Shown here piece by piece: positions 20,601-23,600 of a DNA stretch of 64,000 nucleotides. Both the position numbers and the translations under genes were made by a program. The notes under the pieces are model-generated. The model was not told the DNA's origin. It made no database searches and worked only from the letters and a program-made list of their open reading frames with translations. Within the stretch, counting starts at the first letter, position 1. Each line of letters begins with the position of its first letter. The DNA comes from Diadema antillarum. Its lineage: Eukaryota. The stretch lies in NCBI RefSeq assembly GCF_040938485.1, contig NW_027271575.1, positions 186,001-250,000 of the forward strand, read 5' to 3'.

Positions 20601-23600
20601 CTTATCAAATCTCCTTTTTAATTTCAATGTTTGTTGACATAGTGTCTGTAGTCTAGAGAACATTGCAGATAGAATAATATAAAAATATTGTGAAATGGCA
20701 ATAATGAATCATGAAAAATCGTCAGTTAGCATGCATACAGATATGAAAGAAAAAATACTAGTAGGTGTTTTTCCAGTGGGTACGTTTACATAGTCATTAA
20801 CATAATAACAAAATCATTGCAGATATCATAAGTTGTGCGCAGATACTCAGCCTTGTCATCTTGCAGAGATTGTTAACAGATATTCCTTGATATTTTGTAG
20901 GCGATGTAGTGCTTGGAATAAAGATTCCTATTGTGGTTGTTAAAGTAAAAGAAAAAAAAAACCTTTATTGATAGTGATCATACTGAATTTTGACGTCATG
21001 ACCAACGCTGTGTCACGTAATCAACCATAACTCTGAACTTAAAACAAATCTCTAAATTATTCATGATGTCGGCCCACTTAACGAAGCATTGTACTCAATA
21101 CACTCATGGGTTGTTGTCATTATACATTATTTACGTTCTGGGTCAAATATGAACATGGGAAATCAAAATAAAGTTGCCGCTTACGTATATACCCTCTTTA
21201 ACAGCTTGACGACTTGCTGAACAGTAGGCCAGGAACCGCCGACTCTAGGCCAGGATCGTCTTTGTCACGTCCTGGTACTGCGAGACCGCGCAGTGCTAGA
21301 CCAGGCACTGCGGCATCGAGACCTGGAACGGCTGCATCGAGACCTGGCACTGCTATAGACAGACCAGGAACCGCTAGAGCCAGACCGGGTTCGTCAACCT
21401 CGAGACCGCGCACTCCCAGCTCTCCTCCGCCGCCGGCCTCCGGGGAAGGTTCAGCGACCGTGCCGCTGGTGAAGGTGAGAATGGCTCTTTTAAGTCTTGA
21501 ATACGAAGATAAGAGTTACTCTTCTGTAAGAAAAACACGTAAATCTTCAGATGTCAACTTCCAGTACTCATGCTCTTTTTTGTCCTTCATGCAACGTCCT
21601 CAACACTTTAAAACAGAGCAAATTCAAGAGTCAGAGGAAACTGTTGTTTGTTTTTTCAATGCACAGTGCATGATTTCTGAAGAAAATCATCAGTCATTAA
21701 CAATGATTCAAATGATTACAGCAATGATAACTGCGGGAATATCTTTGAATCATAAGCAATAGAAATCATACAGATGACGATGATGATAATGATGAAAATG
21801 ATAGTAATGATGATAACAAAAACACTGATAATGATTCTTGTAGGCCTAATATATAACAAGAGAAGAAGAGGGGAGAAGAAAGAAGAAGAACAAAATGAAG
21901 GAAAAATATAAACAACGATAGGCCTACAATAACGCCCAGTACGCCCTGTTGCCCAGGATGCAGTATTAATTTTATCCAGACTCCCTTGTAAATGATTTTT
22001 GATTTTGACTTTATTTTCCCATGTCATAGATCGACGAGCCAGCGGGGCAGCCCGGCGGGCCGAAGAAAGCCAGAAATCGTCGCCCGAAACCCCAGAAGAA
22101 TGTTCGGCTGGTTACGGCCAGCATCGAGCGGGAGGACTCGGGCTCCTTCGGACTTCGGGCCGAACCGACAGACGAACAGCGCGTTGCCACGCCGGTCATG
22201 ATGCAGCACCTGATGCAGGTATCGATCAGGGAAATTCGATCCAGTTCTCCATTATCGATTCACTGATATCGATGGATGCTTGAAATAACTCGTGTAGATA
22301 ACAGTTTTAATGCCATATTTTTGGGGTGACGACATCGTTATGCAGGATGTGTACAAAATGAATCCTCCTTGTGTCAGCTTCATGTAGCGGCAAATTCCCG
22401 GACCGCTTTTTGTGATATAATGCAGACAGTGTTTCTATTCTTAATTACTTTCTTATCATTCCGGTAAGAAACAGGCAGATAGACTCTTAGACGGGTATGG
22501 CCAAATGGTAGGCAGACAGATATACGAAGATATGTTAATTTAGACAGATAGATACATAAGTATTTTCGATTATGGTAGAAGTGGACAGGTATAGCGAGGA
22601 GGCAATGGACAACATTGGGGACCGCGCATGGTTTTAAGTCTATGTTCGTTTTGTGGAAAGATTTTCAAGACGGAACCCTCGGAAAGTCATGAAATTTGCT
22701 TTTTTTTTTTCTAATGGACTAACAAACTTATGGAAGGATAGACTTTAGAAATGACGCCACAGATACAGATTACTTTCATTACATTGATAAATTGAGTGGA
22801 TTGACAGACTCCGAAATAGATTAAGAGAGAAAAAAAGTATGGATAAAGAATAATCATGATAATGACATTCTGAACAAGAAGACATAAAAGAGCTATATTC
22901 AGCTTACACACCAGATTTAGAGTATATTCAGAATGATGTCGATTTGGTGTTTTATCTCTTTCTACAGCTTGACGCGCAGCTAAAGGAGATGGCTGGACAC
23001 CAGGCGTCACAGAACACCGGGGGAGCTACGGGAGGGCCAGCACCAGCGTTCGCTGGGCTGACTGATATCCTCGGGGAACCCATTACTGCTGTTATGCAAG
23101 GTATAGCTGTTTTCATTGCTATATATGTAACACTTATAAAAATAGGAGTTTTTCCTGAATTCGATCACTCTTTTTATTCTATTCAAAACAAAAGTTTTTC
23201 CTGACTACCTGAAGATTTGCTGAGACCCCTTTGACATACTGTAACAACAACTTGATGCTTAGCAAAGATAGATTACTGGCAAGTGTAGTGTACAAATAGC
23301 AGTTATATTCGACAAGTGATTGCAGTAGTTCGTATCAAGATAGTCAGGGGAGAAATAATCATACCACATTAATAACTGATACATGCTTTTAAACAAGAGT
23401 GCTATACTCATGCACAAATGTTTTACTACATCGTAGTGTGATGACGATTATATTATATTATATTATATTATATTATATTATATTATATTATATTATATTA
23501 TATTGTATTATATTATATTATATTGTATTATATTATATTATGCATTTTCCAGGAGGTGAGAGAGGTAGAGAATATAAACAGATATATAATAGATAGACTG

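Follow-up and report, generated by a model that had tools for sequence, protein, structure and literature searches.

An R-P-x-S/T motif array conserved in an echinoderm receptor and predicted pseudokinase: a possible multisite phospho-acceptor cluster

Introduction

Why would a receptor keep ten copies of an R-P-x-S/T motif within a single exon, and which kinases, if any, could read them? The question is raised by a 64,000-nucleotide stretch of Diadema antillarum DNA (NCBI RefSeq assembly GCF_040938485.1, contig NW_027271575.1, positions 186,001 to 250,000 of the forward strand), the whole of which is referred to here as the window. One plus-strand gene spans approximately 10.4–34.3 kb of the window and matches the D. 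antillarum protein XP_071503564.1 exon by exon (tblastn). The protein comprises five thrombospondin type-1 (TSP1) repeats, one membrane span, a disordered linker of about 640 residues and a tyrosine-kinase-like domain. A first-pass annotation, made from the sequence itself, had described the motif array in the linker and proposed that it matched the consensus of the ciliary kinases CILK1/ICK-MAK. We find that the array peptide is maintained by purifying selection and recurs across the echinoderms. Our preferred reading, held tentatively at a probability of roughly 45 %, is that the array, carried by a pseudokinase receptor, may be a conserved multisite Ser/Thr phospho-acceptor cluster for CMGC kinases directed by Arg at -3 and Pro at -2.

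Motif content of the array exon

The array lies in one exon, and its motifs fall within a shorter core.

21205–21474, + strand: array exon of 270 nucleotides and 90 codons, phase 0/0, between AG at 21203-4 and GT at 21475-6; residues 475–564 of XP_071503564.1
21226–21417, + strand: 64-codon array core, in which ten RPx[ST] motifs recur in heptad register (motif scan)

The motif scan returned the ten motifs in the numbers given by the first-pass annotation: RPGTA six times, RPGSS twice, and RPRSA and RPRTP once each. The spacing, given there as five to seven residues, was measured as 7, 7, 5, 5, 7, 7, 7, 7, 7. Seven acceptors are Thr and three are Ser, and the +1 residue is Ala in seven motifs, Ser in two and Pro in one. 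The complete 90-residue peptide is present (100 %) in two D. antillarum RefSeq proteins (P0174, P0175). Shuffling these 90 residues with their composition kept gave 0.62 motifs on average and at most 5 across 100,000 shuffles, a test that says little for a tandem repeat, and it is conservation that carries the weight.

RPx[ST] motifs are confined to the cytoplasmic part of the receptor, with none in the ectodomain of the eight full-length sequences in which they could be counted; additional conserved sites of this type are TPRPESTRPDTS, RRNRPHTPG in the kinase insert and RPHTPG at the C-terminus. AlphaFold2 gave the array a predicted local distance difference test score below 50 and no secondary structure, with helices on both sides, a disorder call of moderate weight given the shallow input alignment of nine sequences. 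No Pfam family was assigned to the array exon, and a literature search for the pentapeptides RPGTA, RPGSA, RPGTS and RPGSS yielded nothing relevant. An antisense open reading frame at 21198–21413 was dismissed as merely the mirror of the repeat, and 14-3-3 mode I/II and PKA-type RRxS motifs were absent from the D. antillarum array peptide on inspection.

Selection on the array peptide

The six RPGTA units are identical at codon positions 1 and 2, except for one CGT/AGA difference in an Arg codon, and all their third positions vary; the codon examples from which the first-pass annotation had suggested that the peptide is maintained rather than the DNA repeat are thus correct. The 15-nucleotide unit cores share a mean pairwise identity of 67 %, with scrambled third positions. 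Tandem Repeats Finder reported only two short period-21 stretches of 2.2–2.7 copies at 80–83 % identity, and so barely detects the array, which argues that it is no recent DNA repeat; a recent DNA minisatellite is ruled out by this result and the scrambled third positions. Four SRPGSAV units of the sea star Patiria also differ only at synonymous positions, drawing on other codon families (CGC/CGG versus AGA).

Comparison with Diadema setosum, whose locus has 80–92 % DNA identity to the window, gave a test of the dN/dS type that rests on 11 substitutions: ten synonymous and one non-synonymous in the array exon, the latter (Gly to Ser) outside the array, and eight synonymous and none non-synonymous in the 64-codon core. 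The proportion of synonymous differences (pS) in the array was approximately 0.13–0.14, within the 9–19 % divergence of the introns, and the core has about 135 non-synonymous sites, at which about 18 changes would be expected under neutrality against the zero observed. The ratio of non-synonymous to synonymous proportions (pN/pS) was 0.04 for the array exon; the kinase domain gave 0.10, the ectodomain 0.145 and the remainder of the linker 0.22, these last three values being slightly inflated by the ends of high-scoring pairs entering introns. Because units differ from one another only synonymously, because changes between the two Diadema species stand at eight to none, and because the array is conserved across classes, we conclude that purifying selection acts on the array peptide and not on the DNA repeat, as the first-pass annotation had supposed.

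Conservation and turnover across echinoderms

The array exon was searched against 1.8 billion representative proteins, which retrieved an orthologue from Patiria miniata, and two further protein searches were made; further orthologues came from Asterias, D. setosum, Lytechinus, Strongylocentrotus, Holothuria, Amphiura, Anneissia and Antedon. Among the orthologues retrieved by these searches, the receptor family was found only in echinoderms. A homology search with the 90-residue peptide by itself gave no match, but its length filter removes full-length relatives and the result carries no information on conservation. The array, whose conservation the first-pass annotation had marked for examination, is present in all five echinoderm classes at one site, between an acidic patch and a conserved ...TPxMM helix, in 3–10 copies. 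The number of RPx[ST] units in each lineage was as follows.

Diadema: 10
Sea stars: 8
Holothuria: 6
Lytechinus: 3–4
Strongylocentrotus: 4–5, including RPDS, which lies upstream of the repeat block
Crinoids: 4–5
Amphiura: 3

In Strongylocentrotus purpuratus (locus L003) the array exon starts and ends exactly as in the window, and in Patiria it is fused with the next exon, the counterpart of 22030–22218. The unit consensus across classes is S-R-P-G-[ST]-[AS]-x. A profile of 77 units counted Ser at -4 in 37, Arg at -3 in 74, Pro at -2 in 61, Gly at -1 in 45, Ser or Thr at 0 in 77 and Ala or Ser at +1 in 53, the 77 of 77 hydroxyl residues following from the search pattern. The -3 residue is Arg or Lys in every one of the 77, and Pro at -2 has become Ser in 16. 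Over all units the acceptors are 53 Ser and 24 Thr, and the sea stars use mostly Ser. Lytechinus and Strongylocentrotus each carry three extra units spelled R/K-S-G-S (RSGS, RSGS and KSGS), the array of Patiria contains one RRAST unit, a PKA-type site, and two Asterias species show R-to-C, G-to-R and G-to-E changes within the array. Judged from the aligned units, it is the cluster that is conserved and not the individual unit; gain and loss of units within a persisting cluster is a pattern known for multisite phosphorylation clusters.

The fixed positions of this profile bear on the idea that something other than phosphorylation conserves the array, which could be a flexible, polyproline-II-like spacer with a set length and charge, a repeated motif on which a binding domain docks, or a group of O-GlcNAc or arginine-modification sites. 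The segment is predicted to be disordered and is rich in Pro, Gly, Ser, Thr and Arg, and its Pro at -2 and Ala at +1/+2 partly resemble the preferences reported for O-GlcNAc transferase. In a spacer alone, however, R, P, G and S/T would not keep their places without a single non-synonymous change, and its length varies from 3 to 10 units. Moreover, no otherwise intact unit has Ala in place of the acceptor hydroxyl residue (with the reservation on the search pattern given above), and the acidic residues found at -4 where other lineages have Ser are a pattern that would be expected around phosphosites. We therefore consider an explanation of this kind decidedly unlikely.

Records from one species also differ. 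One Lytechinus pictus record (P0177) differs from two others (P0178, P0179) by one heptad unit, RPGTATD, and two S. purpuratus records (P0168 and P0169) read RPGSS in one and RRGSA in the other; such differences suggest standing variation in both the number and the sequence of units.

Environmental and run assemblies also yielded many unnamed proteins, unrelated to the receptor, with similar heptad arrays of the SRPGTA(S/T), RPGSSV or QRPGTAS type (P0002, P0008, P0015, P0021, P0024, P0035, P0036, P0056, P0071, P0097 and P0098). A Pfam scan of ten of these unrelated array-bearing proteins found no family, and their clusters are without names.

The arrays in unrelated proteins, and a copy number that differs between lineages and even between Lytechinus pictus records, are what could be expected of a neutral, low-complexity slippage repeat without function. 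That account is in effect refuted by the eight synonymous and zero non-synonymous changes against D. setosum, by the scrambled synonymous sites in a repeat that Tandem Repeats Finder barely sees, and by the presence of the array at one site in all five classes.

Outside the array, the C-terminal site has the form D-x-RPHTPG[ST][VI] and is kept in Diadema, sea stars, sea cucumber and crinoids; Lytechinus, Strongylocentrotus and Amphiura do not have it. Sea stars and crinoids carry RPHTPG twice, in the kinase insert and at the C-terminus (P0029 at 948 and 1140, P0109 at 1012 and 1204, P0111 at 697 and 887), and the kinase-insert copy has been lost in Diadema, where it reads RPGVAG.

Receptor architecture

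The remaining features of the gene place the array in its receptor.

14649–14819, 15441–15614, 16081–16242, 17345–17551 and 18104–18313, + strand: TSP1 ectodomain, five exons with one thrombospondin type-1 repeat each (Pfam TSP_1, E 1e-10 to 4e-15; tblastn)
18703–18867, + strand: transmembrane exon, which puts all downstream parts in the cytoplasm (positive-inside rule and extracellular TSP1 domains)
19755–19811, + strand: small juxtamembrane exon of 19 residues, phase 0/0, near-invariant among echinoderms (sequence comparison)
20452–20559, + strand: exon before the array, 36 codons, phase 0/0, a basic helix (predicted) followed by an acidic patch
20530–20547, + strand: EDYPLL, putative acidic dileucine signal [DE]xxxL[LI], 15 residues ahead of the first RPGT (pattern reading)
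22030–22218, + strand: exon after the array, 63 codons, phase 0/0, ending in the start of the conserved helix (sequence comparison)
24368–24661 and 25127–25756, + strand: two exons encoding GGMTxxQATGGK repeats of approximately 22 residues, within the disordered linker that also carries the array (sequence reading)
27907–33634, + strand: tyrosine-kinase-like domain in seven exons (Pfam PK_Tyr_Ser-Thr)
34251–34340, + strand: last coding exon (exon map)
34305–34322, + strand: C-terminal RRPHTP, an R-P-x-T-P motif five codons (GSVSG) ahead of the stop

The array does belong to a receptor, as had been claimed, and lies in its cytoplasmic part, a placement that follows from the extracellular TSP1 repeats and from the basic residues just past the membrane span; both the positive-inside rule and the location of TSP1 domains outside the cell are established knowledge. 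The C-terminal RRPHTP noted in the first-pass annotation is likewise real and falls in the last coding exon. The Patiria orthologue (P0029) has Pfam TSP_1 matches in four stretches and a PK_Tyr_Ser-Thr match at E 1.7e-74.

Immediately upstream of the array, residues R42, R43, K47, L50 and K51 of the exon at 20452–20559 are invariant across nine echinoderm sequences. The dileucine-type pattern is kept in 8 of the 9 aligned sequences, its counterparts in other classes reading ETVPLL, ETEPLL, EEMPLL, ETEGLL, EETPLM and DKKPLI; by its resemblance to the known pattern, EDYPLL may act as a sorting signal. Further along the linker, a unit of approximately 22 residues, GGMT(L/M)xQATGGKK with a Q/P-rich spacer, occurs in about 11 copies, and these repeats are kept in sea stars, brittle star and sea cucumber as G(I/V/M)(T/S)(L/V/M)xQAMxGK.

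The kinase fold was aligned with FGFR-, Tie- and Cad96Ca-type kinases, with six echinoderm sequences taken in. In the window (30377–30487 and the kinase exons at 27907–33634) the Lys is retained, HRD has become HGD, DFG has become SNV, and the activation-loop tyrosines are gone. All six aligned echinoderm sequences have HGD or HGE for HRD and SNV, SNA, SNF or NNS for DFG, and their activation loops are without YY. The best non-orthologous kinase matches are Cad96Ca- and FGFR-like. The receptor is accordingly a predicted pseudokinase: its own fold is without DFG, so the array must be phosphorylated, if at all, by other kinases, and the loss of catalytic residues makes it more plausible that outside Ser/Thr kinases modify the receptor. 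Literature searches for LOC756169 (S. purpuratus) and for sea-urchin receptor pseudokinases with TSP1 repeats gave no match.

Candidate kinases for the array

All ten array motifs fit R-P-X-S/T-P/A/T/S, reportedly the CILK1/MAK consensus and attributed to Fu and colleagues in 2006. All ten equally fit the CDKL5 consensus R-P-X-[S/T]-[A/G/P/S] (PMC9444073, PMC6293279), so that the motif cannot name the kinase; the match to CILK1/MAK put forward in the first-pass annotation thus stands as a fit but not as a specific one. The DYRK preference for R-P-X-S/T-P, which had also been invoked, applies to one array motif (RPRTP), besides the C-terminal RRPHTP and the kinase-insert RPHTPG of other classes, and DYRK was rejected as the main reader of the array because Pro occupies +1 in only one of its ten motifs.

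In peptide assays of CDKL5, Arg and Pro were essential, a small +1 residue was required and Thr was phosphorylated at approximately 55 % of the rate of Ser (PMC6293279). CDKL5 sites include the validated CEP131 Ser35, which reads RPGSA (PMC6293279), as well as MAP1S Ser900 (RPLSA), EB2 Ser222 and ARHGEF2 Ser122 (PMC6293279, PMC9444073). In Chlamydomonas the flagellar CDKL5 consensus is R-P-x-[S/T]-P (PMC12711092), and the CILK1 site in KIF3A, Thr672, reads RPR[pT]S (PMC7140639).

Could the array then be specifically a CILK1/MAK substrate, a phospho-switch through which the receptor is coupled to cilia or sperm flagella, in line with what the first-pass annotation had proposed from the motif alone? 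The complete fit to the consensus and the KIF3A site agree with such a role, as would the flagellar CDKL5 of Chlamydomonas. CDKL5 and DYRK2, which also read R-P-x-S/T, are listed as ciliary kinases alongside CILK1 (PMC10958382), so the idea of a link to cilia is not unreasonable; a connection between receptor tyrosine kinases and CILK1 also exists for FGFR (PMC6410813). The motif, however, has no power to tell CILK1/MAK from CDKL5, and kinases of the R-P-x-S/T type have many non-ciliary substrates, among them MAP1S, EB2 and ELOA (PMC9444073). Three camarodont units are without Pro, and no ciliary targeting feature turned up, no search having been aimed at such features. We regard a specific CILK1/MAK switch as very improbable, and a link to cilia has a slim chance overall. 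A fuller version, in which the receptor would be a ciliary or flagellar membrane protein, the array would be read by CDKL5/LF5 and CILK1/MAK/LF4, and phosphorylation beside the dileucine-type signal would gate entry, retention or removal, also seems improbable; in that case the receptor would in effect report the activity of ciliary CMGC kinases.

Phosphorylation of the array might instead come from basophilic kinases for which Arg at -3 suffices (of the CaMK, PKA/PKG, PKC or PKD type), with Pro and Gly kept for flexibility and not for recognition by a kinase. Arg or Lys stands at -3 throughout the profile and Pro has given way to Ser in the 16 units counted above, which with the camarodont RSGS, RSGS and KSGS and the RRAST of Patiria would suit such kinases. 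Yet Pro at -2 has been kept in 61 of 77 units over approximately half a billion years despite scrambled codons, and no unit has a second basic residue at -2 or a hydrophobic +1, which these kinases are said to prefer. The +1 residue, moreover, is almost always a small Ala or Ser, as CDKL5 requires (PMC6293279). On balance, we judge basophilic kinases unlikely to account for the array.

A possible multisite phospho-acceptor cluster

We return to the reading given at the outset, in which the array would be a multisite acceptor cluster for Arg(-3)/Pro(-2)-directed CMGC kinases. The motifs, their cytoplasmic place, the predicted disorder, and the conservation and purifying selection described above are observed; phosphorylation, the kinases that would write it and its effect on the receptor are what we infer from them. 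Candidate writers would be cytosolic CMGC kinases that need both Arg at -3 and Pro at -2, namely CDKL and CILK1/MAK/MOK, with DYRK for the Thr-Pro sites. With many equivalent sites in a row, kinase activity could alter the charge of the tail either gradually or beyond a threshold; the likely targets would be the neighbouring basic juxtamembrane helix and the upstream acidic dileucine-type signal, and a switch of this kind would control receptor sorting, endocytosis or partner binding. In the heptad S-R-P-G-T-A-x, the Ser also follows the preceding Thr by three residues and precedes the next one by four, +3/-4 spacings that match the use of primed phosphates by CK1 and GSK3. In camarodont urchins, Asp or Glu occupies this heptad Ser (-4) position.

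Several observations weigh against the cluster proposed here. Seven of the ten Diadema acceptors are Thr, the poorer acceptor for CDKL5 (approximately 55 % of Ser, PMC6293279). The R-S-G-S units of camarodont urchins show, within the units aligned, that Pro at -2 is dispensable; since CDKL5 requires that Pro in peptide assays, part of the array cannot be a CDKL5 site in these animals, and these units suggest that Arg at -3 is a harder constraint than Pro, which leaves room for basophilic kinases. The occurrence of heptad SRPGTA-type arrays in many unrelated proteins indicates that such repeats arise easily, and a copy number of 3–10 indicates that the exact number is not critical. Supplements of a Patiria (sea-star) oocyte phosphoproteome contained zero peptides of the receptor, though Arg-Pro bonds resist trypsin and the array would be hard to detect by phosphoproteomics anyway.

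Few physiological substrates are known for CDKL5, CILK1, MAK and DYRK2, and the known ones carry one or two sites. Were the array phosphorylated by kinases of this group, a natural protein would hold up to ten perfect motif copies, selected throughout echinoderm history, and would provide a ready-made substrate and reporter for R-P-x-S/T kinases in a classical model of cilia and fertilization. It would also offer a first handle on the function of an uncharacterized echinoderm receptor pseudokinase, and a clean example of selection on a repeated peptide motif whilst codons, unit number and unit order drift. Should it prove an ordinary basophilic phospho-cluster, the finding would be of local interest only.

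Neighbouring features

Other open frames were observed in the window outside the receptor gene.

1171–1395, 3171–3530 and 6717–6983, + strand: open frames resembling annexin repeats (GTDENVFTRILATRSFPQLRATF, GVGTDEEKLIRVIISRSE, FAKYGETLHSFVDGDCSGDFKKMLLAIL), probably of a neighbouring annexin gene upstream of the receptor
48322–48765, - strand: open frame whose N-terminal segment is hydrophobic (WGWVVTFAAFVAFFALFGMLYSYGILFVALKEDLG), recalling the beginning of a transporter of the major-facilitator or monocarboxylate type; possibly exon 1 of a minus-strand gene
62405–63181, - strand: open frame of 259 residues (NWFKSNKLSLNVNKTNFVYF, LGITIDSHLTWNEHI) resembling the C-terminal part of a non-LTR (long terminal repeat) retroelement reverse transcriptase

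Comparison with known systems

Among known systems, the array can be set beside tandem phospho-acceptor arrays such as the YSPTSPS repeats of the RNA polymerase II C-terminal domain, the five PPPSPxS motifs of LRP6 and the KSP repeats of neurofilaments, which are general background knowledge. There too a short kinase unit is repeated in a disordered segment, with copy number varying between lineages and conservation at the level of the peptide. The likeness to LRP6 extends to the placement of the array in the cytoplasmic tail of a single-pass receptor without a working kinase of its own. The echinoderm motif differs in being Arg-Pro-directed, where those of the comparison arrays are Ser-Pro-directed, and it belongs to another protein family.

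At the level of single sites, the sea-star unit RPGSA is the same as the CEP131 site of CDKL5, and the Diadema unit RPGTA differs from it by Ser to Thr alone; the small +1 residue and the disordered context are shared with CDKL5 sites as well. The RPRTP and RPRSA units resemble the RPRTS of KIF3A, a CILK1 substrate. Known CDKL5 substrates carry one or two sites each, against 3–10 in heptad register in the echinoderm receptor, and are cytoskeletal, centrosomal or nuclear proteins, in contrast to the transmembrane receptor described here.

The receptor itself is similar to receptor pseudokinases of the tyrosine-kinase group (ROR, RYK, PTK7 and CCK4-type) in crossing the membrane once and in carrying a tyrosine-kinase fold from which catalytic residues are missing, and its nearest active kinases by sequence are of the Cad96Ca/FGFR/Ret/Tie types. 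It differs from the ROR, RYK, PTK7 and CCK4-type receptors in its ectodomain of five TSP1 repeats and in the disordered linker of about 640 residues between membrane and kinase fold. What is novel here, relative to these systems, is an Arg-Pro-directed motif repeated up to ten times on a TSP1-repeat pseudokinase receptor of an uncharacterized echinoderm family.

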